The position numbers were made by a program, and so were the translations under genes. 64,000 nucleotides of DNA, taken from contig NC_087245.1 in NCBI RefSeq assembly GCF_037042905.1, positions 12,524,001-12,588,000 on the forward strand. The letters run 5' to 3'. Below the pieces are notes generated by a model. The model was not told the origin of the DNA. It saw only the letters and a list, made by a program, of their open reading frames with translations, and did no database searches. This document shows, piece after piece, positions 761-57,397 of the stretch. Numbering within the stretch: the stretch's first letter is position 1; every line of letters starts with the position of its first letter. This DNA comes from Lytechinus pictus. Taxonomy: Eukaryota.

Positions 761-3599
761 TATACTGTAGGAGTTTTTATGTTCCTGCATGGGTAATAAA
801 CTAATTACAAACCATAGGCCCCTATATTATATAGCAACCAAACAAACACACTGGTGTGTCAGCTGCCCCCCCCAAAAAAAAAATGTCTTTACCTCGTAAA
901 AGAAAATTACGTTCAATTCTGCTTCCAGTGGTTCTTCAATACAAGCGTAGGGGACAAATTTGCCCTGAAGCGAGCACAAAATACTTGTGCATGCTCTGTG
1001 GCACGGACCAAGGATATTGTTAATGACTTTCCAAGAAATATGATATTCTTTTTTTATCTGTTCAATTTTGATATCATGACTTGACGTGCTTCATATCTCT
1101 TCAAATATTTTCATTATATTCAGCTGCCGATTCGTGAACCAGCTCATTCCACCGTGAGAACCTTCTTTTATTTCCACGGATTTAAGAAGAAATCTGCCAT
1201 GACAGTCGAGATCAGAGCTGACATTAATATCTAAAATTATTTAGATTCAAATATATTAGATTGAAATCTAAATCCAGTGTTTTCGACTGGTCACTATTCA
1301 CAGCCAATTTGTATTTATTCTAACCCCATGAATTTAAACTTTATAAAGGTGTGCCAGCCCCCGGCCTTTTGTCAGTATCTCTTCGATGGTATTGTAATAA
1401 TAAAACTGTAAGGCCTATACTCATATTAACATTTCAGAATAATTTAAATCCTCATCTTCTTGCATAGTCGAGGCAAGAGATTGTGAGCTCTTTTTTTTTC
1501 ATTATAACTGAACAAGCAAAGCAATAGTGAGCCCCGGCACCCCAATAAAATCAAATAGTTAAAAAAAATTAATTCCAAATTCTATTCAGGTAAAAAGGTA
1601 TAATCGGTCAGATATTTAAAAAAAATAATGATGCTTTAAAATTACAATGGTATAACAATACATGAATAAAATTGTATTTTTAACATCTGTTTAATTGAAC
1701 GCCATCGTAATTTTTTTTTCATAATGGTTTGATGGCCATCTGTTTTGTTTATTTCTACTATATATTTCACTAGTAAAGAATAATTATAGTCTGGAAAACA
1801 CCCAACAAATTTACTGGTAGAAGTAATGCTTATGAAGTGGTTATTGTGTTCCGTTACTTTGTAGTGTTAATTTAAAATTTGGAACGCAATGCGAGTCCGT
1901 TGAAAGAGCTGTATAAAAATTTATTCATTTTTTTATATAGCATATTGCATTGTAAAACTGTAAAAACACAACATGGTCACTGTTTATCCAAACCAGATTT
2001 TCTCAGAAGATATAGTAAGCATGGTCAGGGCATGGTCATTGTCTGACATTTTTCTAGATTAATATTAGCTAATATCATATCCATAAATTTAGTAAGACCA
2101 CCACACACCTTATACGATATAAGCTGTGACCCGATTTGGAATAAAACGGAGTACAATAATGATGATAATATTGAGACATGGAATGTCTTACTATATGTAA
2201 TGTTCTAATTTATCGTACGGATCCTTATGTTCAAATTTGTGACTATCCTATTATTCTTATTAGAATAAAAAACGAATTTAATATCTAGTCGCAATGACGT
2301 CATAGCAATCGTACATTGGCTATTATTTGAAACTAATCTGGCCTTTACTCAAAATAAAGGCTTGTAATCATCTAAAAGTGTTATGTTAGTCTTCTTTCAG
2401 TTAATTTGGACCTCAAATAAAAAGGTAGTTTTCGTTCACATTTTCAGAAAATTAGCAAAATGCGATTTGTTCCAATGTTCCAAAAGGAGAACGTGGACCA
2501 ACCGCAAGATGTGCGTGCGCGGGAGGCCTTTAATTAGCAAAATATTTGGCAGTGAGTAATGACCAGACCCGGTGACAAATATTTTCTAGTCCACGGACAC
2601 AATAAGCTGAGTTTATGGTATTTGCTTAAAAGAAATCCACGATGAGGATTGTTTAGTCAGACGATTTAAGAGGAATCTGAGTCTATGATGATAATCATAT
2701 ATTCCAGCTCCTGCCAAAATTATGATTTTGTGACACAAATTCAGACTTCTATACTGCTGTGTATAATCATAACCGTATATGGCATTTTGTGCAGAGACCG
2801 GGGCAGAGACGCAAGAATAATTATGTTAATGTAAGCGAGAGGGCGAAACAATCGAGTTTATATCACGCACAAAAAAAAATCTTGTGCACACTTTACATGA
2901 TTGTTTTTATAAAATTGCAACAAAAATAGGGGATAGGTCCTATTTCGGGGAGGGCAACTTCCTCCTCTACCCGGTCTTACTTTATTCGTGTTATTCAAAA
3001 GATGTAGGTCTATGTAAATATCAAACCATGCAAAGAGCGTATAGAATCCCCTTGTTGATGGCCATGATATCTTCTGGAATGTAATTTTCTCCAAACTGGA
3101 AATCGGATTAGTGCATATTGTGTCAACGAATATAAAATAATTATCGATTTTTAAAATCTAATTCATACTTGTTAAGGAAAGGCACCCGAAACCCTCATCA
3201 GGTGGATGTCCTAAAGTAAAATGATGGAGGGGCGATTGCTACGAAGTATTGGTAGTAGAGTACACCATTATGTACACCATAACGTCAAAGAGGGGTCACA
3301 GCGTCACTGTGTGTGTGTGCGTGCGTGTGCGTGGGGCGTTGTTATTATTTTGATGTAACTGATTCACGACCCATCTCTCTCTTATTTTAAATTTAATACT
3401 CTCCTTCCTTTCATCCCGCCATCATTCCCCCTTTTCTCCTGCTTTTCCCACAACTACTTGAAAAATCATTGACCGTCATGCACCCGCATGCCCCTGTAGA
3501 GCTGCCCCTATCTTTAAAGTAAAAATTACCTATACGTGCATCAACATGTCTCCTTTTCATGAATTAAAAAAAAAGTTTTAAAAATATGCGTGTTTACAT

Positions 3600-3780
3600 T
3601 TTCTGTGTTCTTTGAAGGCTAACCCCTGTGACTCGATTGGACGCGCACGACTTGCGAATCTCAATGGTTGTGTAGTGCGGTGTGCGAGCGAGGATGCACC
3701 CGACCACCAAACCAAACTCTTTTCCGCCACTCGGCTCACTGTGCTTGGCGACCCCCTCGGGCAACACACACTGCTAAGCT
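3600..3780 (+). promoter_or_regulatory. Probable promoter/TSS region of the p75NTR gene
   Basis: Locally CpG/GC-rich segment with an inverted CCAAT box (ATTGG 3636-3640), about 0.6-0.75 kb upstream of the ATG at 4359. No splice acceptor is required between it and the ATG. The TSS position is inferred. Confidence 0.45.
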
Positions 3781-4358
3781 GCTCTACATTGACTTCATCA
3801 CTTCACCCTTGTTTGTGTATTGTGGGTTTGCGTGTTTGATACCCGTGAAGTTTTATTGTACCTCATAAATCCAACCGGATCGCACACTTTTCGTCCATCC
3901 AACCAAATTAACTTTTGTCATTGTATTCTTTCTGCCTGTGAATAATATTGCTCTTCTCTCGCTGATAATAAAAGATTTCTACACGTTTTGGGAACTCCAC
4001 ATAACACCGTTTGTGATAATCTGTTAATGGATGTTATCCGTCTTGAATGTTTAAAAACACAAGACTGAATTGATAAGAGATACCCTCTTATCGTCAGCTT
4101 CGGATACTCGCGCCCGTTTCTTTTATTTTTGGACTAAATCCCAGCAATAAGGACCTACGGTGCAACATAGTTAGCAAGGAGGTGTACTTTTGGTACCAAA
4201 CTATTTTGAAAATCGCTCCTGAAATCATAATCCATATGCCTACTGTTGAAACCCGTGAGCAGTTCACTACAGCCACAAAAAGAAGATATTATCAATCGAT
4301 CTTCGTGGAATAGTTATCAAGCAGACCTGTTATCAAGGCCTGGAAGACACCAAAGATC

Positions 4359-4445
4359 ATGGATCATTTCTTGAGGAATCGTGTTTTGGTGACTTTCCTG
4401 GTAGGGGCTTTTCTGATTACCTGTGTAAGGGCAACGAACCTGACG
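4359..4445 (+). CDS. NGFR: p75NTR/NGFR coding exon 1 (signal peptide MDHFLRNRVLVTFLVGAFLITCVRA-TNLT)
   Basis: ATG preceded by an in-frame TAG (4311-4313); n/h/c signal peptide ending VRA; strong donor ACG|GTGAGT at 4446; phase 0 joins exon 2 in frame (ACC ACA ATG). Confidence 0.8.
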
Positions 4446-7410
4446 GTGAGTGATAGCTTTATTTTCAAAGGTATAACTAGCAAGAAAGAGGATGGGTTTT
4501 TATTCAGTTTATACCCTTAAATGTTTTTTTAAATGTAATTTACATGTATATTTATGTTTGTACGTTCGTCGTTTGTTTGTATCTTTGTCCATTTTTAAAT
4601 GCACTACTTTACCAAGACATCCACGTACATTAATTGCGACACCACCACCATCTTTACTTCTTATGTGTAATGAACGATATAGCTTTGATATCAAAGTTCC
4701 AACATGCCAATAAGGAACTAAATGGATAACATTTCATTTTACTACAATTGTAAACACTCTCCCTCTGTCACCACTTTAACTCTGCGTCACACCCGACCCC
4801 CTTTGCATTACCCTTTCCTTCAAACCTCAACTCCTTAACAATTTACAAGAATGAAATACGTGGAAGATCTAATGAGGAACAGGCCGGGGAAACAAGGTAC
4901 CAGTTGGCAAAGAGACAGCTTCTATCTCGTTTTCGATCCATTGATCTTTAAATGATTTCTCTGAAGTTCTAGATTTGGTTTAGAGTTAGCCATATTTTCC
5001 TTCTTTTGATGTAGTATACCACGTATTGGTTTCTGATTTTGAACCACCAAAATTGTCATTGCATGCATAAAAAATAGGTCAATCTGAATTTGGACTGCTT
5101 ATCACGCTAAGACATTCCCGCTTGTATAAAGGATTATGATATTTTAGATCAAGGAGTAGAAGAGGGGGCAGACAGACAGAGGAGACAGAGAGATAGAGAG
5201 ATCCAATCATCAATATTTCCGCCGTCATGTCGAACAACTTTTGATTTTAAATGAAATCGAAATGATAAAACCAATATTTGGTTTTTCTCTCAAGTCTCAC
5301 CCTATACTTTGTAAATCCCCCGATCCTCGTAAACATGGTAAACTCGATCAGCTACCGGTAATCCCCACGAACTCATTAGTTAAAAAAAAATCCTATTTTG
5401 GTAGTCGACTTATTATTTCTTTTGAACTTATGGACTGCCTATCATTATTTCTTTATGTATATAATTCATGTTTCATGTGAAATGTATCGCGGTAACACAG
5501 AGGTACCGTTTAATTGCTGCATGGCATTCCGAATAATCCCGTTTGCAGAAAAAAAAAACCTTACAGAAATTCTTACAAGAGAGACGATGCAAACACGGAG
5601 AAAGAGAAATAGAAGGGGGCTTGATGTTGAATTTTCATATTCAATATTCCTTTGGGTATACCGCTTTTTACGGAATGTACTTTCCATCGAAGAATAATTA
5701 TGTAAAAGATTTGCTTCCGTGGAAGCGCTTATGGTAAAATTAAGTCAGGGAAATGGGAATAGAGGGTAAAAGAGAATTCTAGGTTGATGATTTCGTCTGA
5801 AAAGTGTCCAACGTTCATGACATAGTACTAGCTGCTTTGTGTGCCAGTACTACTTATGCGTTAAAATACATTTTTAAATATGAGAACTGAATTTAATGAT
5901 ACCATTTTACAAAACTCAATGAATCTCTAACTATACATGTACATGTATTTCCTTTTAGCCCACAAAATACTTTGAATTCAGCAGCTCATTGTAGCTACTT
6001 GTCTTTGATTCTATTCATTCAAGTGCAACATGCAATTCATGTATGTAGATTGTATATTATTTGGTGAAATTCATTTATATTCATGGTGTCAGGGGCGGAC
6101 CCGGGATTTACACCCCAAAGTTAACACTCCACCTAATTCGGTCATAAATAATGCCTATCCAAAAACAAATCAAATTTAACAATGGGCATAAGATGAGGGC
6201 ACCGCTATTTATCATAGACAACCATTAATTTATATCTTTGAGATAAATGAGGCATTTTCCCTGCACCATCCCCCTCTCTGGACCTGCACGTGCAAGATTA
6301 TTTTTGTCCTAAAACTGACCACCTGCAAGTATCGGATCGATCGTTGATACTTCCGACAGGTCGACAGCATGAAGTGATTTTTACACCCTGGTAACACCTA
6401 GCAGTGGTATTAACACCCCGACTGAACACCTTGATCCGCGTATAGAGATTGTGAGTCATCAATGATTATCTATCGTTCACCATGCTACCACCAATAGTTC
6501 GAAATGTAAAGTCAGGAAGCTCATCAACTCAAATCAGGTGCGCTTGGTGGAATTTATCTAAGATATGCAATGTTCATAGAAAACGTAAAAAAAGGAGAGA
6601 AAAACTCGGAGAATGGCGAAAGTATGAAAGGCTAAACGAATTAGGTGTCATCTTCACCTGTAGGTATAGACCGTCATTGTATTTACAGATTTTGAATAGA
6701 TCCAGTCACTGAAAATCTGGTTGACACTTGGATATCTATTAGTATTATTTAAAGCTAAAGCGATGGTCAGGAATTTACATGAGGAATATGCCTAATATAC
6801 TGCTAAATTATTTGATTGGTTGATTGATTGATGGATGGATGGAATGATTTATGAATCGATTGATTGATACTATGCACTAATTTTTAACGATTCCTCTTTA
6901 CAAGTACTGTTTGGTGGCGATTGTTTCTGTTTTGGTTATCTATACATTAACTAATAAAAGGAGGCATCAAGCACTGATTGTTGTCAACATCATGGACGCT
7001 GAGAAGTTAATTGAAATATTTTGAAGATCGTATGCCATAAAGGTTATCATGACAAGAGGGTTCCAAACCTTTGGAAAGCAGAGAGCATGGCGGATTCATT
7101 CAAGGCGATGAGAATTGAAGTTCATTATTGGAGCAATGTCTATTGTACTCGGGAGGGTAATTATCGGCAGAGATGAAAGAAAGCGACAAGATAATAAAGG
7201 GGGACTGCGCGGTGATTAAAGATGATTGTCGGGCAAAAATATCAGGCTTGTGAATTATGTGCCATGCTTATGTTGTAAATTATAACATGAATCATTCATT
7301 AGGATAAAAGGTATCCTGGATGGGTATCAATGTAATATGAGATAGTTTATAATATAAAGTGAGCAAAGACGGTTTTAAAGTTGATGATAAACGCGACTGA
7401 AATAAGATTA

Positions 7411-7413
<3 letters not shown>

Positions 7414-7488
<75 letters not shown>
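7414..7488. repeat. (TA)n microsatellite
   Basis: About 75 bp of near-perfect TA dinucleotide. Confidence 0.95.
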
Positions 7489-7496
<8 letters not shown>

Positions 7497-10189
7497 CAAT
7501 TCAAAGGTTAATCTAGTTAAGGTTGGCATGGTTGGGCAAAACTAGGCTTCTTTTTTATCAGAGAGAACCAAAAGTTGATGAGCAAGTTTTGGGATGTGAT
7601 TTCATTAGCTATTTTATACTTCTTGCTTTCTGAGTAAGCAAAAAAAATCTACCAAAAAAAAAAGAGAGAAAATATGGAATGGCTAATACAATATGAATGT
7701 CAGATACTGGGCTCAAGTTTACAAAAATCATGAAAATAATTTCTTAAAGTGATTTCAAATATTATGACTTAAGATATTTATAAAATGACATATCAAAAAT
7801 GTAGATCTTTATATTAGGTTTACAGATCATGAATCTACCTATTATTTACATAACTTATCAGAATATTATATCACAAAATCATCAAACGATAATTTTCCTA
7901 CTAAAAGCGAATGATTCGTGATGGCTGATAAGTATTATATTCACGGTATTTGTGTTGAATTAGTAAACTATAACCGGGGTAAATAAAACGATAATATATC
8001 TCTGAAAATACGCGAGATATATCTAGGTGTCATTGTTATCATTATTATTATTATTATTATTATCATTAAGTTATTGCTATTGATATTCCTGTAATATTAT
8101 TCATTTAATTTTATTAACAACATCCAAGGTCTATATATTTGGATTATTCAAATACCCTTCGAAAGGTCACGCTTGAGCAATAGAACAAATTGTATTTATT
8201 ATTCATTGAATATTTAACTCATAACTCCTTCTCGCTCTTTTTTCCCGTAGAAGCGTTAGATAGTTTTCTATATCGGCATTATGAATTCAGAATAATTTAT
8301 AACGCGTACATCTGTAAAGGCGTTTTGTTGTCAAGACCACCTGTAAAAACTATGAATGTGTAACGACGGGCATGTGTGATATATAACAAGGGAATGATGG
8401 GAGGGGTATTATGGGATATATCGAAAAGATGAAGGTGAGAAGGGAGATGTGATGGGCAGGTGAAGTAAAGGTGTTGAATAAGAAATTGAGGCTTATCATG
8501 AGAGAGAGAGAGAGAGAGAGAGGGGGGAGAGGGGTATAATACAACCTAGAATGTATTAAAGATTGATTACTGGAATGCGTCATTAATGACATTGATCAAA
8601 TCAATCTACATGGGTTAACAAACTATTTAGGTAAGCGATTTTATTTTCCAGTTACAAAAATGAAGGAGCAATTTCCTACAACTCCCTAAAATAAAATCAA
8701 CATTAACGTTACAATCCATGAAAGTTTCAACAAGTGAATGTATAAGGAGCAATGTAAGTATTCGAATGGATCCTCTGTCATGTTGGGTACATTCCGCTCC
8801 ACCAACGCACCGCGGAGAGTTATTAATCTAGAGTAGATCGAGACAAAGGGAATGGAATTAGGCATTCTAGCGGCATTTCTAGCGATGACTTATGATGCGA
8901 TAGGTATGATATCATCGTAGAGAGACCATCTAATTGAAAAGACAAAAACCGATGGCAAAATCACCATCTCGATGGAGGGAAAGAAATAATGAAACGCTGG
9001 GGTGACGAAAATGAACTCGCTCATCCAACATAACAAAACAAAAACAAACCGCCTAAGTAGACACAAAATATCACGTGACTTGCCGGCTTAATAACATCGG
9101 CAGACATCAGACAGAATTTAGAACGGGGGACGAGGGAAAGAGGGAGAAAGTTTATTACGAATTGGAAATGGAAAACAATAAACAAGAAATTGATGACTAA
9201 TCGCACGCGCGCTCTCGTGTACGCTCTGCCGCTGCACTTTTATAGATCTACCCATTTCCAACTCTCAGCAGCATTGTGCTTGTACCATTTCTCGTCTGCC
9301 ATCTTTCTTTCTTCCTTTCTCTCTCTCTCTATATATATATAGATCCATCTTTCTTCTTCCTCCACATTGTAATGTGTACAAATACTGAGAAATGTACAAG
9401 CGACTGAAAAGAGCGAGTCCCGGAAAGAATAAAACGTTTAATTTTTCAAAGACCGTGCAGGAAGGTTAGCCCTTTCCACGGGAAAGAGGATACCTACCTG
9501 TAAAAAAAAACAGGTTGAATGATTTAAATATTCAATGGAACTAAATGAAACATAGCCTATGCTTTTGCAACATTAGTTGTTTTTTTAAATATGATTAATT
9601 ACTAGATTTTTATTCAAACGGGGTCATATGAAATTTCTTCGTTCTTTTTCGAAATGCGTCAACCGCTAACTCCAAACAGTATATGGTACCGAACTGATTT
9701 TCATTTCACTATTTTTTTTTAACTTTTATCTACAAATACAAAACAGATTGAGCTTTAAATTATGACATCTCTTTATTATTTTATCTGATGATAGTTACAT
9801 TCACCTGTTACCTTTAAATTCAACGTTTTTCATGCTCTTATGGTTCTGTTTTACATGAATATTCAGTCTAAAACTATTACAATTTTCTTTCATATTTTGC
9901 TGTACATTGAAAAGTGAGTGTAAAAAATGTTCTCTATAGAAATCATGTGCAATATAGGCCAACTGTCGATACCATTATCACTTATTTTTCCACCTTTTTA
10001 TTGTTTTCCTTTTCTTATGAAACATCAACTTCTCTCTTCCCCATGTCCACTCCCCCCCCCCCCCCCCCCGTTTTCCCCTATTTATTCACAATATTTTTAT
10101 TACCTCGTCACATGCATAGTACGTATCAGATGGAACTAATTAAGGATGATTTTGATGCGTTTGATAATTAATTTAAATGAGAAGTATGC

Positions 10190-10340
10190 AAAATGACGTC
10201 ACCCCCAATGAGCCTTACGCGGCATCCCCGATGCAAGATTATAAAAAGAACCCGACGAAATTGCACTCCCATCAAAAGATCGAGAAATAACCAATCAAAT
10301 TGTCTTCTCATTACGCGTTGCTAGGCAACCAGGTCTGACG
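10190..10340. promoter_or_regulatory. Candidate intronic enhancer (CRE + CCAAT + RFX X-box)
   Basis: TGACGTCA 10194-10201, CCAATCA 10291-10297 and GTTGCTAGGCAAC 10317-10329 within 140 bp. Motif match only. Confidence 0.4.
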
Positions 10341-10559
10341 CCGTGTACAGCATGCCAAACTGAGAAGCAAAGCCATTCTCCAAAATCTCTCTCTCTCTCT
10401 CTCTCTCTTTCACTCACATTTTATCTTTCTTCGTAATTCTTTATTTATTATTGTAATACCTGCCAAGTTCTGCCCATCCCCTTTTCATCTCCCTTTCCCT
10501 CCTTGCACTGGAAGTTTTTCTCTATCTAATATTTGCCCCCTGTTCTCTGGATGCACTAC

Positions 10560-11178
10560 TTAAAGGGAAAGTCTACCCCCAACAAAAAGTTGATTTAGAT
10601 AAGAGAAAAATCAACCAAGCATAACACTGAAAATTTCATCAAAACCGGATGTGAAATAAGAAATTTATGTCTTTTTTTAATGTTTCGCTTAATATCACAA
10701 AAAAAGTTTGATGCACATCCTGGCTGATATGCAAATGAGAGGATGACATCACATACTCAGCGTTCCTTTTGTTTTTCCATACATGGTTTATGTAAGATAT
10801 TATAATTTTCTCCATATTGACTTCTTAAACAAACTATTTGTCAGGAATGTTATGTTCTCATTGATTATGTGGAATTACCATTATATTGACCTTTTGTGGT
10901 ACAGGAGAATTCTTACTGTCAAGTCTGTAAAATTTAAAATGTATAATCATAGGATTAAAAACAAAAGAAATAGTGAGTGAGTGACATCATCGACTCTCTC
11001 ATTTGCATGTCACTGAGTTGTGCATGTAATTTTTTGTGAAAAATAAGCGAAAATTTAGAATATCATATAATCTTTATATTTTACATCCTATTTTGATGAA
11101 ATTTTAACGATTATGCTTGTTTTCACTTTTCTCCGTTGATTGAAATAAACTTTTTCTGGGGTGGGCTTGATCTTTGAA
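10560..11178. mobile_element. Non-autonomous DNA transposon (MITE) with TTAA-AGG ends, Kolobok/piggyBac-like
   Basis: Left end TTAAAGGGAAAGTCTACCCC...AAAATTTCATCAAAA is matched by right end TTTTGATGAAATTTT...GGGGTGGGCTTGATCTTTGA; internal inverted sub-repeats (ATGCAAATGAGAG / CTCTCATTTGCAT). Confidence 0.75.
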
Positions 11179-12182
11179 AAAACTCTTTCTACAATAAGGT
11201 TATGGCAGCCGAAAGAAACCGATATACATGTAGCGGGAGAAACAGACAGAGAGGCAGGCATAGAGCACACAGTGAAATTCTGTTACGATATTTAAGTTAA
11301 AATGGTACTCCAATTTCAAAGTCATAAAATATTCATAATAGTTTCATTTCGATTCCCTTCATAATTTATTATTATCAATTCCCAGAGAAGTTGAATATCT
11401 GAAATGGAATTCGTGCTTCTTCCTTTTTATTCAAACTACCCGCATGCGTGTGAAGAAACATCTGACCGAAATAAAATTGTTTGAAATACGACAGAGAAAT
11501 CCTCATAGTGGGTATGGATGAATTAAGATTCATCCATGGTCTTGATCAGTAAGAAATGAATTTCATCATTAGGGAATGATGATTTTTTTAAATTATGTTG
11601 AAATTTTAAAAAAGTGGGACATTAAAAAAATAGATTCGTTGGCCTGATTACGTATAAAAAAAATTGCGACACTAACGACATGAACGAGGAATTACAAAAA
11701 AAAATGAAATAAATGTATAAAGATAAAAATAAGATATGCACCAGCTGCAGTGAATGTCAGACCTTTGTCGCTTTTGACAGATATTCAGGTTATGATCATG
11801 GGTAGAGTTGAAATTGTATACAATGAGAATTCGATAAAATCAGCAATAAACCAGATGGAATGGCGAATTGAACGAGAGACAAAGGGTTAACGAGTTACAG
11901 AATTCAAAGTGGCTTATTTTTCTGCTGTCGGGTCACGCTCGTGACCGCATAAAATGGCAGAAAGCTGCATTAAAATTCGAGTTTCTTGTTTGCCAGGACG
12001 CGATGTGTGACTGGAATATGGGACAAGCTTGTTTGCTGGCCAGCCTCAGAAAGAGGGGAGAGTGGTGCTCACTTTATAGGGGTTTTCAAGGATTTCATGT
12101 AGTCCCACGTATTCAACTTCATGTCGTTAAAGAGCGCATCTTGTCGAGAACACCGTATTGTCGACTGGACGAAGAAGATCTT

Positions 12183-46092: not shown

Positions 46093-46693
46093 ACCACAAT
46101 GCCCTCCGATACAGAGGAACCACTTACATCCATCTCACCAACAAAGATACCAATGAATGATACAGTCACACAAACAGATGGGTGCATGACGGGAGTTTAC
46201 TCCGCCACCGGTGAATGTTGCGAATCGTGTCCGATTGGCTTCGGCGTTCATCGGAAATGTTCGGACCCCAACGCCACCAACACGATCTGTACAGTCTGTG
46301 AACCAGGCATAACGTTCTCCTCCGTCACAAGTCACGTGATGCTGTGTCAACCCTGCACAAGATGTAGCCACAATGAGGTGATGACGTCAGCATGCAGCAT
46401 CATGCAAGACACGGTGTGCGAATGTGCGCCGAACTACTTCCGAACGGATCCACAGACCGGTGACTCGGCACCTGGCCCCACATCGGCATGCAGCCAGTGT
46501 ATGTTTTGTCCTCCTGGGTTCGGCGCGGCAGTTCCATGTTCTCCTCGACAAAGCTCTCAGTGTCAAATATGTGCGAATGGGACCTACTCGGATATCGTCA
46601 GCTCGACCGAAGGGTGTAGGAAGTGTTCTGTTTGTAATGAAGGCAGCATCGTACTCAAGCGTTGTACTGATATATCAGACACCGTCTGTTCAG
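46093..46693 (+). CDS. NGFR: p75NTR/NGFR coding exon 2 (S/T/P-rich leader + four TNFR cysteine-rich domains)
   Basis: Acceptor TTGATTACAG| at 46092. CMTGVYSATGECCESCPIGFGV...ITFSSVTS...GTYSD...DTVCS parallels vertebrate p75 CPTGLYTHSGECCKAC...VTFSDVVS...GTYSD. Donor CAG|GTATCT, phase 1. Confidence 0.95.
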
Positions 46694-47554
46694 GTATCTA
46701 TAATTCATATAAAGCAATATACCCTAGTCCTTCCAATGTAAAGACCGATGCAAGACAGACGCGAGAACATTTTTTATTTTGCCTTTTGCCTCCCAGGCCA
46801 CAGACAACGCAAAACAAATTTAGTCATAATAATTGATTTAACTGATTCACATTACCCCTCAGCGTCATCCTGCAAAAATCATATCACCACGATTTCCAAA
46901 AAAGAAAGGAAGACAAGTAATAAAGGAAACATAACATTCTAATAAATGGAAGATATTCAGTTAAGCACCCTAAACATACATTAAGTGGCAATTTTTTTAT
47001 AGCATATAATGAGAAAGTTGCATAAATAGTACTTATTAGCATTTTACACCCTTCTTGACGATCACATATCGTAAATCTTGTAAATTAGAAATTTCGTATT
47101 TTGGGGTCGTCTATTTCCTTCGTCACCAATGAATTAGGCAGCATTTGTCTTCATGTAACCATGTCTGATACCCTTATTTTGATACACGCTGAGCAGCCCT
47201 TTGTATCATTAAATTCACTGAATCAACCGAGTGGTATCCTCACTATGTTATAGCCCAGGATCAAAGTCCAGGCTACACAAAATTTTTAATCCAATGTTTC
47301 TATGGAAGGTTTAATAAAATCATACCGAATAATTTTTCATCGTCATTCATATGATATTAATACTTCTTTTATGTTCTACCTCATTTGAAAGTATTTTCAG
47401 GAATCTTTTCACTGCAAAAGTATAATCCTTAGCATTCATGATGATGAATAATAGGGAACTTGTACTTCATGAAAGTTTCTATTATAAAACTGGTTTCACT
47501 TGATCAACGCGGAGGCAATACCATTTTTTTTTGTAATTTCTTACTTATGCACAG

Positions 47555-47771
47555 ATACATACATACCTTCAATCACCGACAGACCACAGAATGATAAAAT
47601 GACGACGACGACATGGATACCGAAATCAAACACGAAATCGTCAGGTTTCAGCGTCGTACCCATCTTCTGTACTCTTCTCGGACTCGTCATCTTCGGTCTG
47701 CTTGCTTACGTCATCTTCAAGAAATGGTCGTTTAAGAAGATGAAGCTGAGACAGACTCAGAAAATGACAAG
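47555..47771 (+). CDS. NGFR: p75NTR/NGFR coding exon 3 (stalk + transmembrane helix)
   Basis: Acceptor TGCACAG|; VVPIFCTLLGLVIFGLLAYVIFKKW aligns with p75 LIPVYCSILAAVVVGLVAYIAFKRW; donor AAG|GTTTGT, phase 2. Confidence 0.95.
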
Positions 47772-47844
47772 GTTTGTAGTCATAACAATATGGCATTTTA
47801 GCAACACTTCGCAGACGCTTTCCAAACACTGATTATCTTTGTCA

Positions 47845-48030
47845 AAGCCCTTTATAACAAAGCAGCCTTTGTCGAAAATTGGTGAATCAAAACAGCAATG
47901 TCGTCCTGGACCCTGGACAAACGACATATTTGCCATTTTTCATCCGGTCCGAATCTTAAGACGATGTGCTCTCCCGGTCCACCAACTTCCGATGATGACA
48001 TTTAATCTGTCCATTGTGATTTGACGGGCA
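47845..48030. mobile_element. Palindromic repeat element, intron-3 copy (paralogue of 50135-50326)
   Basis: Shares CTTTGTCGAAAAT.GGTGAA...CAAACGACAT...ATTTGACGGGCATTTT with the 3' copy. Confidence 0.7.
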
Positions 48031-48667
48031 TTTTGAATAGAATACTAAACGTTGCAGAAAGCGTCTGTGAAGTGGATGCTAAAATACGCTCTTGCCACCA
48101 AAAATGGACATATCGTCTGTCATTCATAATAATGCAATATCTTTGAATGGTCTGCACTCAGTTTTATTGGTACCATGAAATTGCTTTAAGGAAGGTTGGA
48201 GAACTATGAAAACGTAAATAGAGTGTCAATCCATGGAAATATTCTATGCGCTGCGAGGATAGCATTGTCCTGTTCACATGACCAAAAACTTTTTGTCTGA
48301 ATAGTATCAGAAAAATCGGCAAGAGTGAATGTTGCTGCGTTCCTATATGCGTTCGTCTCCAAAGGTATACCGTCGTGAATCGTCAAGTCGCTATACGAGG
48401 GGGTAACGAGAATCAGATCTGATCGGTGATGGTTCAAAACTCAATGTTAAATATGTGGTATTTAAGTTCACCCATCCGGGTTCCAAGTAATATTTCACAG
48501 GATAACGTTTGAAAATAATGAAATCATTGAAACCAAATAGATAATGAGATTTAAATGAGAATCAATGCGTTTTAAAATAAAATAAAATAAAGCTCATTTT
48601 TTCTCAAAAACGACCCCATCCCATCTTGCACCTTTTTTCATGCTCTTTTTTATACTCAACCATGCAG

Positions 48668-48807
48668 GTCCAGTTCTTGTCATACTGATATTGAAGGAAA
48701 CACTATCTCCATTCTATCTCTAAAGAATGGTCACAACTATACATCTCGGGACTCGGCATTAGATAGGTCAGGTATTGGCAGCATCTGTAGACAACCGCTC
48801 ATGGCAG
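48668..48807 (+). CDS. NGFR: p75NTR/NGFR coding exon 4 (cytoplasmic juxtamembrane region)
   Basis: Pyrimidine tract + CATGCAG| acceptor; 140 nt open in the required frame (SSSCHTDIEG...RSGIGSICRQPLMA); donor CAG|GTAAGC. It converts phase 2 to phase 1 as needed to join exons 3 and 5. Confidence 0.85.
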
Positions 48808-49413
48808 GTAAGCATCTAGACACCAGAATCATTTTTTTTTCAAATAGCCTTTTTTTATCCTGATAGCTCATCTAACATGATTGACACCGGTCTACTTTGA
48901 TGAACGTCACTCTGGTAATTGCCGACCTGAACACTATGAACATGTGCAAAATGAGGCAAAGCACTGTTGAACAAGGAAGTTAGATCCTGATCTTTTTGCC
49001 AATATCTTGATTGAATCTGATAAAGTTGATCAGTTCGGTAGTGGGAAATTAGCGTAAGCATCCAAAATATTTTTGGGAATGTACGAATGTTCGACATTTT
49101 TGCTATTGTTTCTTCATCAGTTTCTACGTTTAATGATTTCTCAATTCTAGCTTTGGACTGTTTTTCTTGAATCCATTATTCGGAGACTATACCCATAAAG
49201 CCGAATGGTGACACATCCTCGAAAACTTGTTCTCGGACACGTTCTCGGATTTACGCCATCAGACGGAATGGCGCGAATAGTTGGCAAGAATTTGCAAACT
49301 TTCTGTCTAACATAAACGGAAGAAGTTCTACATTTTTTAGAACATAAATGAAGTCTCGTCCACCATATTTCCTGTTCAGTCATTCCTACCATTTAATTTC
49401 ATTTACTTTTCAG

Positions 49414-49742
49414 TTCCAAGTGCGATGCCATATCAGCAGTTACCCTCAGATAAACGTCACGAGGTCGAACGCTCTCTTTCAGTCTCGAGAATGGACGGTC
49501 GTGATTGGCGAGGTTTGGCCCGGGAACTAGGATTTTCAGATCTAGACATCGTTCATATCGCCCAAACATGTACAGCATCAACACCACCAGCCAGGGCCTT
49601 GTTTATTGCCTTGCATAGCAGAGATACCAAACGCGCAACCGTTGGAACGATTGTGGAAGCGCTCAGGAGAATACGACGAAATGACGTTGCCGATTTAATA
49701 CCAGTTTTCACTTATAGCGCTTACCACTTTCCAGGTTCATGA
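49414..49742 (+). CDS. NGFR: p75NTR/NGFR coding exon 5 (death domain)
   Basis: Acceptor TACTTTTCAG|. YQQLPSDKRHEVERSL...DWRGLARELGF...EALRRIRRNDVADLI matches the p75 death domain (YSSLPPAKREEVEKLL...TWRHLAGELGY...AALRRIQRADLVESL). TGA at 49740-49742. Confidence 0.95.
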
Positions 49743-52146: not shown

Positions 52147-52709
52147 GACATGCATGGCTTAGAACGGAGTAAATATAAAGGCGATTGAACAGTTATGGGC
52201 TAGAATAGATATATGCGAATAAGATGGAAACTCAACGCGGAGACAAGAAATAAAATGATTTAACTATAAACTATTTACAAATGGTATGACAATGTAGCTT
52301 CAAAACTCGAACATTTTTCTTTCAAGTTTTGAATCTTTTTCATTCAAAATAAAAATTTGTGAATAAAATTACATTTCAATATCCCAAACCCAGTATTTGT
52401 TCCCAAACCAAGAGGTTCTTTTAACAAAAAAAAATCACTGTTAAATAACATTCGTAGTATTCAAATGTTCGGAATGACCATTTGGAATAACAAGATGTCA
52501 TTATTAATCGAACATTTCTCGTACAGTATACAGCAGATCGTATATTTTTATCAAATTTGAGGCATAGGGATATTCTAAAAGGAACAAACAAAGCACAATA
52601 ATCCAATATTTTAGAAATTAATTCAACTTTATTGTATACAAAAAGCCATATCAAAATCCGTTTACATTTAGAGGAATGAGGAAATTACGATGATTAGTTT
52701 AGAGACTTT

Positions 52710-52814
52710 TCAGTCATTGGTTATAAAATCGTTGTCTGGTAGAGTTTCTCGAACTGACTGTCCCAATGGCATTGGGTAGCTGTGCTGCTTAGTTTTTATC
52801 CTATCCAGCTCGTC
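52710..52814 (-). CDS. Unknown secreted protein, terminal exon (coding extent is isoform-dependent)
   Basis: Acceptor TTTTTTTCTTCATTGCAG| at 52815. Phase-0 reading gives DELDRIK...FITND* (TGA 52712-52710); phase-2 reading gives TSWIG* (ends 52796). AATAAA on the - strand at 52633-52628. Confidence 0.6.
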   Translation of the reverse strand, partial: DELDRIKTKQHSYPMPLGQSVRETLPDNDFITND

Positions 52815-53106
52815 CTGCAATGAAGAAAAAAAATGGATTTAAAGAAACTTTTCGGCTCTGTTGATTTACTAATAAAATTGAACTATTTTGCCTGCTATGT
52901 ATTTTGAAGGGATTTCTTTAAATGTATGTCTAGTTGATGAATAATGAAATTATTTAACTGCTAATGGTAAATGAATATTATACAAGACTCAAGAGCTTTT
53001 GAACTATTTCCTTAATGTTTGGTTTAAAACTTAGCAGAATCGATTTATTCTCATAATTTATAAGTTATTGTTTCTATGAATATAGAAGAAAATTGTTACT
53101 TCTCAC

Positions 53107-53128
53107 CTTACTTGTCGAAACATATTCC
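53107..53128 (-). CDS. Unknown secreted protein, candidate 17/22-nt micro-exon (GICFDK)
   Basis: Acceptor TTTTTATATTCACATGTACAG|; GGA ATA TGT TTC GAC AAG TAA; two overlapping donors, CAA|GTAAGG (after 53112) and AAG|GTGAGA (after 53107). Confidence 0.5.
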
Positions 53129-53450
53129 CTGTACATGTGAATATAAAAAGCAACATTATATTAAAATCGGTGACAAATAATGAAAGAGCGAATTTTACCA
53201 TTGAATTATTTTTCAAAGAACCTGGACATGCTTTGTGATTGCTGGGCGAATTAAAATTATTAGCTCCTATTTGTTTTCAGAAATTCCATCATAGTAATAA
53301 AAATCTGGATTTTAATTCTGCCTACAAAAAAAATTAATATAAATCATTGTTTAAGTATTTAAACACAATAGACTATATCAATACATCATTTATGACTAGT
53401 ACGTTTTTCCCCTTAACGTTAAAAAGGATTATAGAACAAAAATTACTTAC

Positions 53451-53463
53451 CGTCGGGCAGAAT
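53451..53463 (-). CDS. Unknown secreted protein, 13-nt micro-exon (G-FCPT)
   Basis: Acceptor TTTCATTTTCGTTTCAG| and donor ACG|GTAAGT bracket 13 nt; phase 2 in, phase 0 out. Confidence 0.65.
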
Positions 53464-53834
53464 CTGAAACGAAAATGAAATCAGAAAGTTATTGAAAAAA
53501 ACTGCCAGCTATTTTCTAGATCTTTTATCGAAGAAAGCAACAATGCGTTGATTCTAATGTGAACCGTCAAAATTGGAATTGACGTCAGTTATCATTCTGG
53601 TCCGGTAGAAATTTCTTTGCCAATTCTCGTTTAACCAGTCTAAATAAATATGCATTTACAAACGCCCACCAATAGATCATGGTAATTATATTTCATTTAC
53701 AATCAGCATTTACCAACTTTTATCATTTAAATGATGTTTATATGAAATCACTTCTTGCGACTCTGATGTTACAAAAATAATACTTGGGATTATTATCTGA
53801 TAAGTAGCGATTCGTCGAGTCCAATTAAACTTAC

Positions 53835-53873
53835 CCCCTATAGAAAATTTCCAGGGCAGGATCCATGCTTTCC
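53835..53873 (-). CDS. Unknown secreted protein, 39-nt exon (Q-ESMDPALEIFYR-G)
   Basis: Acceptor TTCTTTACCTTTACAG|, donor GGG|GTAAGT; symmetric phase 2-2, open frame. Confidence 0.65.
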
Positions 53874-54823
53874 CTGTAAAGGTAAAGAATGTGATACGCG
53901 ACATAAGTATATTTTGAGGATTATCATAGTCATTTGGTCCTCTTTAAAATCATGGCGAGAAATCAAAGCGACTCACCAAAAAGATTAAACAACAATGGTG
54001 AAAATGCATTTGGAACAGAAAGTAGACATGGTCTGAACGTGGATAATATAATCGGGGGGGGGGGGGGGTTCATAATGTTGGATGTACAAGAAACGAAAAT
54101 TGAAGTTTTTCTTTTATTCATACCAGCTCAAATTCTTATCATATGGATATGTAAAAAAATTGAGGGTTCGGGAAATTCACTTCCATTTTAGAAACACCAG
54201 GAAAAATTGTGAATGAGATGAAAATCAACTAGAGCAAATTACGAACAACAATTGGAAATTTGTAGAAGAAACATTTGATGAGGGGATCAACGTATCAAAA
54301 TGAATGTAATTCTAGGTTTGGCATCCAGATGCCGATATACAAAGAGCACATCAAAGAGGACATGTCCTATACCCTAACCCAATCACAGTATATCAAGTCG
54401 TAAATTTTCAAAGAGCTGTAATATTTTGGTTTTATTTCTACATTTGAATAATATAGTATATATTCATTCTCAGCATTTCATCGCATTATGATAATAATGA
54501 TTAACATAGTATTGTTTCCAGTCAGATATATACATGGACAATGTTAACGACATAATATGCATATAAACTACTTAAAAAAACATTAATCGTTTCCATTATA
54601 GAGAAAGAAGCCTTTTCATTAGTTTTAACTGTTCAATTCGTTGGAGTTTTCTTTTCCCTTTACCTTTTTGCCATTTCTCTCTATTTAGGTCGGAGATTAT
54701 CGTCATTTATATTTTGAGAGACAAGGTTTACGCTGTATAATGTACACTTGGGGATTTAACAAACTAGGCTAGATTTTGTTAAACTCGCCCTTTTACAGTT
54801 TGACACATTAGTTGGATACTTAC

Positions 54824-54968
54824 TGACTCGATTGGGGAACCTTTTGATCCACGGATTCTCTTGATTGAGATTTATCATCAAGACAGACTGATGACGTCAA
54901 TCCGGAGATCAGACTGGAATATTTGGACAAGAAATCACTCAGCTTGGATGACATCGCTTCCAGGGTTT
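54824..54968 (-). CDS. Unknown secreted protein, coding exon 4
   Basis: Acceptor TTCATCTACAG|; KTLEAMSSKLSDFLSKYSSLISGLTSSVCLDDK...VPQSS is open in the phase-1 frame; donor CA|GTAAGT. Confidence 0.8.
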
Positions 54969-55259
54969 CTGTAGATGAATAACAAATATTTTGAGTGGGA
55001 TTATCTTAACTGGCATTTAATTAAAAATTGTTAAACCAGTCATAAGTTATTTAAATTGGCAAGGACTGCTGATCCGTTCCTTGCTGATCTGTCCATTGCA
55101 ACAAAGTATGAAAAAATCTTAATATCGTATTCAACTTCATGGATACTTATTTCAAATAGCAGAATGTATGCTATTGACAATATGAAACATTTTCAGACAT
55201 TTGCAATAAAAAGCAAAGGGGATAAGAATATATTACTTGTTTTGCATGTTAGGAATACC

Positions 55260-55400
55260 TGGGCCCCGTTTTACAAAGAGTTACGATTGATCCGATCAAT
55301 TTCAAGTATACAGGTATATGGAAATCCATCAATGTCATAATTTTTATTCGGTAAAGTTGCACAATATCCTTTGTAAACAAAGAGAAGCGCAGTGAATAAG
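55260..55400. mobile_element. Truncated GGGCCCC-type MITE in an intron of the minus-strand gene
   Basis: GGGCCCCGTTTTACAAAGAGTTACGATTGATCCGATCAA end resembles the other GGCCC-terminal MITEs in this window; the second TIR is not clear. Confidence 0.4.
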
Positions 55401-55668
55401 ATACATATGAATATACATCATAGAAAATATTCTAAAACAAACATTCAGAAATGTACCAGGTCCCAGTTCCCGATTTGAAATTTTTGCGATCATTTCTAGT
55501 CTAAAACAATAAGGTTTTTTAATTGCTAACAAAATGTAAGTTTCCCCGGCTCTTTCATGCCCCCCTCCCCCTATTTATGAAATCTTGGATCTATTTCAGG
55601 CCAAGTTCCTCCCATGGATGTCCCAAAACGAAAAGAAAAGTGAGCCAATTCTCGAATATAAGACTTAC

Positions 55669-55845
55669 TTTGGTCCGTCTCGCCATGGGCAAGGAGGTTA
55701 CTGACATATTCGATCCCGTGAGCGATCAGGGTTGCTGTATCAGTATGAGTCTTGATCTCTTCTCTCTTCGACACAAGGTAGGGGAGTGCAGGGGAGAACT
55801 TGGGCTCAGATTTGGCCTTGCACTTGTATATAACGGTCATGTCGA
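55669..55845 (-). CDS. Unknown secreted protein, coding exon 3
   Basis: Acceptor CCCCTTTTTTGCAG|; IDMTVIYKCKAKSEPK...LLAHGETDQ; donor CAAA|GTAAGT; phase 1-1. Confidence 0.85.
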
Positions 55846-56333
55846 CTGCAAAAAAGGGGAGAAATACACGTTATAATTCTCGCTTTGGCCAGAATGAGGG
55901 ATCCCAAAAGAGTGAATAGAGTTCTTGCGACAAGTCTGAGTGTTGCTCAGTGTCAGAAAATTTTATCACATATTGCCAACCACACAGGGATAACGCTTGT
56001 CATGGTATACTATTTCGTAGTTGTAGTTCAGTATTCAATCAAAACTCGAAGTCGTACTCATATTGTCAAAAGAATCGCAAATTATCAGTACAATGTTGTC
56101 AGAATACTAGTTATTCCTTTGCCTGTGATTATGTAATTATAGTACATATAATACATTGGGATCATCGTCAGGACTCGGGTTGACCGAGTTGCATTTCGTT
56201 ACATTTTAAAAGTTACGTGTACACAATGAGTCAATGACCATGTTTACAAGTAAGGAATAATCATACGAGTGCTTTGAAGCACGAGAATATTGTTTTGGAA
56301 GTTTTTTGTTTTATGTAAAATATACAAACTCAC

Positions 56334-56400
56334 TATCTGGAACGATGACGCTTGGAATAGAAACGCCAGTCTTGACAGCAATGCTGTGTATTTTCGAAAT
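56334..56400 (-). CDS. Unknown secreted protein, coding exon 2
   Basis: Acceptor CTTTTCTCTTTTTCAG|; ISKIHSIAVKTGVSIPSVIVPD; donor ATA|GTGAGT; phase 0 in, phase 1 out. Confidence 0.8.
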
Positions 56401-56655
56401 CTGAAAAAGAGAAAAGGCGATCTAAATTTTCAAAAGACCAGGATCTCTCAAAGTAAAATTAACCAAGTCTCGATGTTCAACAAGTTATGAGTTAGTTAAC
56501 CCTATTTTTTGCATTCACAATGACACGAAATACTCGTTTGATTGTATTTTGCAAAATGGTATTCCAAGATTTGGAATAATTCTCATTTATCCTGTTGAAT
56601 TCTGTAGCATATAATGTAAGCTTTGTCTTGTAGCAAGATAGTATTTTAAGCCTAC

Positions 56656-56895
56656 CTGTAAATCAAGAGACGACATCGCCGACATCAAGGGAGAGAGCAT
56701 TTCGACGACTGCCATGTGAGAAACGCTCTGGATATACATGGCGCTGTCCACGATCGTCTCATCGTTCGACTGCGCATCGGAGTGAACGGTGTCGGTCGAT
56801 TGCGACTGTGATGTTGATGGTTTGGCGTCGGTCGATGAGACGGGGGTGCCGCAAGCCATAGCGACGGCGCAGAGAAGGAGGAGAACGGACTTCAT
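56656..56895 (-). CDS. Unknown secreted protein, coding exon 1 (signal peptide MKSVLLLLCAVAMACG + S/T/D-rich segment)
   Basis: GC-rich coding-like sequence, AAGATGA start context, typical signal peptide, donor CAG|GTAGGC after 80 codons. Confidence 0.88.
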
Positions 56896-57015
56896 CTTCT
56901 ATAGATAGGAAAGTAGCAACCTGTCGTGTAGAACTATGATGTCTTGAGACACAGTGTAGTTGGACGTGCCCTGTAACTCCTCGAAATCCTTCTGCATGCG
57001 AGCTGCGAATGACAA

Positions 57016-57023
57016 TTTATATA
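57016..57023 (-). promoter_or_regulatory. TATA box of the minus-strand gene
   Basis: TATATAAA on the - strand about 120 nt upstream of the ATG; C/EBP-like TTGCGCAT about 55 nt further upstream. Confidence 0.6.
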
Positions 57024-57397
57024 CCCTTAACAAGGGTGTATGAATTGACAAGGGGGAAATAATTAAACCACTCATGCGCAACTGTTGCTCCAACAATAAT
57101 GAAATGTTATGCCAAAACCCCAAATAATGACAATTAGGTATGCTTTCTAACTGATTCAAATTTATGGATGCTTCTTTTTTGCAAACCTAGTTACGAGGTA
57201 TTCCTTTTACCATTATAGATAAACATTAATACATGGAACTCAGTTTGCATACATTACTTGTTGCTATGTCTGGCATGTCTTTAGAAAGATTTAAGGTTCC
57301 AAGAACATTCATTTGTTTGAAAAGTATGCATACAATTTGAATGTAATTATAGTAAAGAGATCTATTTGAGAGCGATTCACTCGTCAGCAGATTAGTT

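Follow-up and report, generated by a model that had tools for sequence, protein, structure and literature searches.

Speract signalling in the sperm of the sea urchins Lytechinus pictus and Strongylocentrotus purpuratus is a textbook example of chemotaxis and of receptor-guanylyl-cyclase signalling, and it has generally been analysed as a one-ligand system. The sperm-activating peptides (SAPs), to which speract (SAP-I) belongs, act via sperm receptor guanylyl cyclases (PMC1435932). Resact (SAP-IIA) of Arbacia is a short egg-derived peptide with one intramolecular disulfide, C1-C8 (PMC4137060). Here we describe LOC129257573, a gene on the minus strand of a 64,000-nucleotide stretch of L. pictus DNA (assembly GCF_037042905.1, contig NC_087245.1, positions 12,524,001 to 12,588,000 of the forward strand; hereafter the window). 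Judged by sequence, its product is a secreted-type prepropeptide of the sea-urchin SAP/speract precursor family with one cysteine-bearing cassette.

The closest described relatives are the speract precursors, i.e. P11761/NP_999771, Q25121 and the "sperm-activating peptides-like" gene on L. pictus contig C2. They share with LOC129257573 i) a signal peptide, ii) a helical pro-region (33-36% identity) with both of its cysteines, iii) the motif M-x-(P/T)-x-L-x-x-(F/I)-x-(K/R), followed by a Gly-initiated decapeptide and Lys, and iv) the same exon plan, with a 67-nt exon 2, a 39-nt exon 5 and a cassette of 13 nt plus about 20 nt. They differ from it in that 1) a speract precursor has about 5-10 cassettes, whereas LOC129257573 has one, ending in a stop, 2) positions 3 and 8 of the LOC129257573 peptide are Cys, and the GGGVG tail of the speract type is lacking, and 3) LOC129257573 falls in a separate, strongly supported clade and lies on a different chromosome-scale contig. 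Compared with resact, the predicted peptide would be alike in being short and in having one intramolecular disulfide.

Family membership and the peptide cassette

No exon of LOC129257573 encodes more than 80 aa; paralogues in its own genome (812 Mb) were sought exon by exon, and an exon-3 profile was then made from three loci. Searched against 1.84 billion representative proteins, this profile gave only six true matches, with expected values (E) of 1e-16 to 1e-27: the LOC129257573 product itself, two Lytechinus proteins named "sperm-activating peptides-like", P11761/NP_999771 of S. purpuratus (E 1.6e-16) and two unnamed fragments or transcripts. A full-length family profile searched against 5.8 billion proteins yielded 12 members, among them SAP-I of Hemicentrotus pulcherrimus (Q25121, E 2e-84) and P11761 (E 3e-82), while a sequence search of the PDB with it returned chance matches only (E above 0.3). 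The best single-sequence relative is E2S049 of Pseudocentrotus depressus (63% identity, 100% coverage), which UniProt lists without review as "Sperm-activating peptide I". It is an orthologue with the same architecture and a single terminal cassette, but it has no Ser/Thr-rich insert after the signal peptide and differs in 4 of the 10 peptide residues; its name implies speract, yet its peptide is not speract-like. Every match with a named source is a sea urchin protein, in keeping with the lineage restriction proposed earlier, as far as the distribution was found.

The locus had been put forward, from the letters of the window alone, as an unrecognised gene and as a candidate for something undescribed. 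RefSeq already holds the exact L. pictus model, since the 233-aa product is residue for residue XP_054751912.1 ("uncharacterized protein LOC129257573 isoform X2", P0001), together with the Lytechinus variegatus orthologue, which sits in the 90% cluster of that entry. Moreover, the gene is a paralogue of the speract (SAP-I) precursor, whose family has cloned precursor entries (P11761, AAA30079), and this clear match to a characterised family takes away the novelty that had been claimed. Thus, the NCBI gene prediction and the family, with its cloned founding member, are already known, and only the gene's name is missing. What appears to be new is the family assignment of LOC129257573, the recognition of conserved Cys-loop decapeptides in two of the three paralogue clades (see below) and the cassette made of a micro-exon pair; in the searchable literature nothing was found on any of the three, nor any paper joining "speract" and "microexon".

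The C-terminus of the product reads R/GFCPTGICFD/K followed by a stop (slashes mark the expected cleavage sites), i.e. a single Gly-initiated decapeptide between single basic residues. In the family alignment, RGFCPTGICFDK lies under KGTMPTGAGV(D/T)K, the first decapeptide slot of the speract precursors (K/GTMPTGAGVD/K in the S. purpuratus precursor and K/GTMPTGAGVT/K in the L. pictus speract-type gene). It follows a pre-cleavage motif, ESMDPALEIFYR, that is common to the speract precursors (DYMETPLSLFLK-G). The peptides of the orthologues are R/GFCPTGICSS/K in L. variegatus and R/GNCLTGGCID/K in P. depressus, and all three species keep G1, C3, T5, G6, C8, the preceding Arg and the terminal Lys followed by a stop.

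The exon structure of the cassette points the same way. In the L. pictus speract-type gene (C2:23920000-23938999, joined 7123-11385), each 33-nt unit of decapeptide plus Lys is split over two micro-exons, one of 13 nt consisting of one base and four codons, e.g. ag/A TTC GAC TTG AAC/gtaagt (FDLN), and one of 20 nt encoding G-x-x-x-x-(K/R) plus GG (here the slashes mark splice sites); at least 7 such pairs follow in succession, a few hundred bases apart. Exon 6 of LOC129257573 has the form ag/A TTC TGC CCG ACG/gt, and the arrangement ag/N plus four codons/gtaagt recurs in the FDLN, TMPT and ISPI micro-exons of the speract gene. Exon 7 is homologous to the 20-nt G-x-x-x-x-K-GG exons, and the counterpart of exon 5 is a homologous 39-nt stretch with the same end phase (7123-7161 of the C2 locus), placed before the first micro-exon pair. 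Position, flanks and exon structure thus agree in making the predicted LOC129257573 decapeptide a homologue of a speract unit. No intact peptide motif was found at the paralogous loci, since the micro-exons divide the peptides, and it was mapping of 4-residue words that located the peptides. For the L. pictus speract-type gene, RefSeq lists isoforms of 264 and 287 aa with different sets of units; alternative inclusion of cassettes could vary the mixture of speract peptides.

Gene structure and transcription

LOC129257573 is an expressed gene of 8 exons (Table 1), spanning window positions 52610-57023 on the minus strand after its boundaries had been fitted to splice sites. The sequence-only reading had proposed a minus-strand gene of 7-8 exons with a TATA box, a polyadenylation signal, intron phases of 0,1,1,2,2,0 and a common product of 227 aa. 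Both signals are present, every intron is bounded by GT..AG, the phases after exons 1 to 6 are the same in the fitted model, and five long exon pieces of the minus strand account for the 227-aa string without a mismatch. That string is exact within the transcript, but the expressed transcript encodes 233 aa, i.e. the 227 plus GICFDK. Likewise, the 8-exon form was borne out by RNA-seq reads, whereas the 7-exon alternative, with exon 6 joined to exon 8, stayed below the 3-read threshold for listing a junction.

The reads came from raw stranded runs X5 and X6, which carry the same species label; about 6% of each run was read and compared with window positions 52400-57300. All 7 predicted introns are crossed, each by 6 to 21 reads and with CT..AC ends on the plus strand, i.e. 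GT-AG on the minus strand. For exon 6, 12 micro-exon letters stand between both sides of the joint 53129/53835 in 10 reads. The junction reads all have their first mate on the plus strand, one consistent orientation that in most stranded libraries means RNA from the minus strand. Coverage tracks the exons, being present in the bin 56828-56991 and zero in the bin 56992-57155. A pseudogene or a chance chain of open reading frames was ruled out by the junction reads together with a ratio of nonsynonymous to synonymous substitution rates (dN/dS) below 1. In RefSeq isoform X1 (239 aa, P0009), exon 5 is joined to an upstream alternative acceptor of exon 8 (tail 52843-52799, minus strand), so that the peptide cassette is skipped; its junction was below the same threshold in runs X5 and X6.

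The sequenced animals differ from the reference by three nonsynonymous changes, L5F, K90E and D214Y (window positions 56883, 56373 and 53863), and by three synonymous ones; D214Y falls in the conserved pre-cleavage motif. At 95-99%, the likeness of most reads is what would be expected of a highly polymorphic sea urchin.

In four other runs (X1-X4), coverage was confined to repeats that lie within intron 3 or upstream of the gene, and these runs gave no evidence for LOC129257573. The first repeat, at window positions 55257-55400, is a high-copy repeat with an RNA-seq depth above 100 on both strands, many variant letters, loose ends, and joints that go back or lead to the opposite strand; it explains the apparent word share of 0.2 of these runs. 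The second, at 57241-57272, upstream of the promoter, is a short repeat-like stretch whose X1 and X2 contigs have a depth of about 100 and unrelated flanks on both sides.

Table 1. Features of LOC129257573 and of its neighbour, in window positions
Feature	Positions	Strand	Content or evidence
TATA box, TATATAAA	57016..57023	minus	about 30 nt upstream of the start of RNA coverage
Exon 1, 5' untranslated region to phase-0 end	56656..56991 (coding 56895-56656)	minus	ATG at 56895; junction 56400/56656, 7 reads
Signal peptide, coding	56895-56848	minus	within exon 1; then Ser/Thr-rich linker and start of helix A
Helical pro-domain, coding span including introns	54871..56766	minus	residues 44-194; AlphaFold2 model, identity counts
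Exon 2, 67 nt	56334..56400	minus	end of helix A and ...IP..VP loop; junction reads
Exon 3, 177 nt	55669..55845	minus	Cys111 in C-K-A-K-x-x-P-K-F/Y motif, helix B; junction 55845/56334, 21 reads
Exon 4, 145 nt	54824..54968	minus	helix C, conserved Cys190, poorly conserved linker; junction 54968/55669, 12 reads
Exon 5, 39 nt	53835..53873	minus	pre-cleavage motif ESMDPALEIFYR and first two bases of the peptide Gly1 codon; junction 53872/54823, 6 reads
Exon 6, 13-nt micro-exon (A+TTC TGC CCG ACG)	53451..53463	minus	peptide residues 2-5 (FCPT), cassette half 'a'; 10 reads
Exon 7, 22 nt	53107..53128	minus	peptide residues 6-10 (GICFD), Lys233, TAA stop (53110-53108), cassette half 'b'; junctions 10 and 8 reads
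Exon 8, 3' untranslated region	52610..52814	minus	AATAAA at 52633-52628; 3' end approximate; junction 52813/53106, 8 reads
p75NTR-like receptor neighbour	46099-49742	plus	TNFR_c6 repeats 46099-46833; TNFR_16 transmembrane domain 47500-47829; Death domain 49425-49739

Paralogues and the helical pro-domain

In the L. pictus genome, contigs C7 and C2 each carry a paralogous locus colinear with exons 1, 3 and 4 at 30-43% identity, and the three paralogues agree in their splice phases and in the 67-nt exon 2. A maximum-likelihood tree of the pro-regions divides the family into three clades (support 99-100): A) LOC129257573 with its L. variegatus and P. depressus orthologues, with peptides of the form G-x-C-x-x-G-x-C-x-x; B) the speract/SAP-I precursors, with peptides of the form G-F-x-L-x-G-G-G-V-G; and C) the C7-type genes, with peptides G-x-C-x-x-G-x-C-x-x. 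The clade C members (S. purpuratus XP_011671754, "sperm-activating peptides isoform X2", and the C7 locus) have the same pro-domain and carry their Cys-loop decapeptides (G-x-C-x-x-G-x-C, e.g. GFCLEG(S/K)C..) on 13-nt micro-exons, but they differ in having two cassettes, linked by K-K or I-K-K, and a C-terminal tail that is longer. In L. pictus, the C7 locus (C7:9674000-9692999, joined 3370-9960) contains the 13-nt micro-exons QCPN (8369-8381) and FCLE (9118-9130), followed by the GDCRMKKG and GKCID... exons, and these exons match XP_011671754, which ends ...GQCPDGDCSRIKKGFCLEGSCV.... The only L. pictus entry of clade C among the family matches is an 87-aa fragment (P0017), so that the C7 gene looks under-annotated.

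Within clade A, the L. variegatus locus aligns with LOC129257573 over the whole gene. Substitutions amount to 4.0% in the coding exons and 8.6% in the introns, exon 8 is 92% identical while the introns are 84% identical, and dN/dS over 226 codons ranges from 0.30 (NG86) to 0.54 (LWL85). A convergent p75NTR-like gene (Table 1) lies beside the gene in both species.

The product consists, in this order, of a signal peptide, a variable and disordered Ser/Thr-rich linker, a helical domain, a disordered linker, ESMDPALEIFYR, GFCPTGICFD, Lys and the stop. It had been described as secreted, with no transmembrane segment and no recognisable domain, and each of these points agrees with what we found. 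Residues 1-16 (MKSVLLLLCAVAMACG) resemble a signal peptide, with a hydrophobic core (19-residue Kyte-Doolittle mean of 1.8) and small residues at -3/-1, and they align with the signal peptides of the P11761-type precursors; the judgement was made by hydropathy and alignment. In the mature part, the best 19-residue mean is 1.2, and neither the single exons nor the full protein contained a Pfam domain above threshold. The Ser/Thr-rich linker shows a 7-residue indel relative to L. variegatus at residues 22-28 (56832-56812, minus strand). The P. depressus orthologue has 12 residues fewer in this linker, and clades B and C have about 18-19 fewer; the segment is a fast-evolving spacer that may be O-glycosylated.

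From 15 family sequences, AlphaFold2 predicted three long helices (residues 42-91, 122-155 and 161-189) and two short ones, with a predicted local distance difference test (pLDDT) score mostly above 90 over residues 60-190. Residues 195-233 are disordered, as expected for a processed tail. Cys111 is invariant and lies on a long loop of the helical domain, in the motif C-K-A-K-x-x-P-K-(F/Y), and Cys190 is conserved in the family alignment wherever that region is present. A secreted protein with long helices, loops between them and one conserved disulfide brings to mind a long-chain four-helix cytokine-like ligand. We consider this extremely improbable, since the model, with three long and two short helices, is not an up-up-down-down four-helix bundle and the sequence homology points to SAP precursors. 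Foldseek found nothing in the PDB at E of 0.001 or below and no cytokine in the top 50. Against the AFDB clusters, it gave one significant match, which is no cytokine but an unnamed protein, 32% identical and probably a relative. VIA-align wide (48,161 chains) listed generic helical bundles and no cytokine, the best being a plant CC domain with a Z of 9.4; this is below about 13, a value described by the tool as common in helical models. The cytokine reading was rejected on these Foldseek and VIA-align results, although a model from an alignment of 15 sequences cannot exclude a remote likeness. As modelled, the pro-domain has no identifiable fold relative.

The conservation of this domain raises another possibility, namely that the active product is a secreted, disulfide-stapled three-helix protein, with a Cys-bearing tail that is not released and is either an appendage of structural use or the remnant of a SAP cassette. 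Relative to P. depressus, the helical domain has 114/151 identities (75%), the pre-cleavage motif 8/12, the peptide 6/10 and the two linkers 3/16 and 8/27, and relative to each paralogue the helical domain has 56/151 (37%). Thus, the helical domain is the best conserved part; it is also predicted with high confidence and retained in all three clades, and the precursor has a single cassette only. However, the tail keeps the exact SAP frame (basic residue, Gly, decapeptide and Lys) and both cysteines in three species, and the micro-exon cassette and the pre-cleavage motif have been kept under selection. The pro-region of clade B is removed on processing. Since, in addition, the clade B domain belongs to a precursor named for released sperm-activating peptides (P11761), we regard a helical active product as unlikely. 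The pro-domain, being better conserved than the peptide, probably has a role of its own, e.g. in folding, sorting or presenting the peptide.

Proposed processing and its meaning for the family

We favour the view, with a probability of about 0.7, that LOC129257573 encodes a SAP-family prepropeptide giving rise to one disulfide-looped, SAP-like decapeptide, the processing, tissue and target being inferred. In this scheme, i) the precursor would enter the secretory pathway, ii) it would be cleaved after Arg222 and Lys233 would be trimmed, by analogy with the proposed processing of the Lys-flanked speract units, iii) Cys225 and Cys230 would form a loop, making a cyclic decapeptide, iv) the decapeptide would be released, most likely from the ovary or the egg coat, and v) it would act on sperm, like other SAPs, via a receptor guanylyl cyclase and the cGMP pathway.

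Several points weigh against this view. Release of the decapeptide is predicted only, a lone Arg makes a weak processing signal, and expression in ovary or egg is presumed, the tissue labels of the RNA-seq runs being coded. One peptide per 233-aa precursor is uneconomical compared with the 10 or so copies of the speract precursor. The peptide is less conserved relative to P. depressus than the helical domain (6/10 against 114/151 identities), and its two last residues differ even between the two Lytechinus species (FD in L. pictus and SS in L. variegatus); such divergence fits the species-specific evolution of SAPs, but fits an unimportant tail equally well. In the searches of 1.84 and 5.8 billion proteins, no annotated S. 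purpuratus orthologue of clade A was found. Finally, neither the LOC129257573 product nor its P. depressus orthologue matched PF08250, the Pfam model of the SAP decapeptide (G-F-x-L-x-G-G-G-V-G), while P0012 of S. purpuratus did so at E 2.6e-9. With no match, the names SAP-I and speract do not apply, but the protein can still belong to the precursor family.

The same result bears on the question of whether the peptide is addressed to sperm at all, since the gene could have arisen from the SAP family by duplication and neofunctionalisation and now encode the precursor of a somatic signalling peptide (neuropeptide or hormone). Duplicated peptide-precursor genes often switch tissue and target, at 6 of its 10 positions the peptide departs from speract, and the transcripts are present at modest depth in libraries of coded tissue. 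As to tissue, the data favour neither side, and every characterised family member is, by its source name, an egg-associated SAP precursor. Sperm activators of similar size with a Cys loop also occur in other echinoid orders, the disulfide of resact (PMC4137060) being a case in point. A somatic peptide therefore seems to us quite improbable.

The sperm-directed decapeptide that we favour would resemble the Cys-loop SAPs of other orders, with the difference that those were purified from egg jelly and are sperm-active, whereas the LOC129257573 peptide is predicted only. Suzuki is said to have given, in 1995, the sequence KLCPGGNCV for SAP-IIB of Glyptocidaris, and SAP-IV and SAP-V reportedly are further Cys-loop classes. 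The C-P-x-G-x-C of SAP-IIB, which we take to occupy residues 3-8, would then be in the same register as in GFCPTGICFD.

Assigning LOC129257573 and one more paralogue, both with conserved cysteine-loop cassettes, to the speract-precursor family leads to a concrete and testable hypothesis, which we put forward tentatively and would not yet expect to hold. The camarodonts, including L. pictus and S. purpuratus, may make, besides speract, a second and so far unrecognised class of egg peptides, namely disulfide-looped decapeptides of the form G-x-C-x-x-G-x-C-x-x, from two additional SAP-precursor paralogues; these peptides would be related to the Cys-loop SAPs of other orders and would act on sperm via a receptor of their own or directly on the receptor guanylyl cyclase. 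If, on the other hand, the peptide is not made, a strongly conserved helical pro-domain would be left without a known fold relative or function. Duplication of the pair of 13-nt and 20-nt micro-exons offers an explanation for the growth of multi-copy SAP precursors. Should the hypothesis be true, the linear and looped SAP classes would be ancient paralogous cassettes and not order-specific inventions, and the number and mixture of the peptides would evolve by units of one micro-exon-pair cassette, perhaps being varied by splicing as well.

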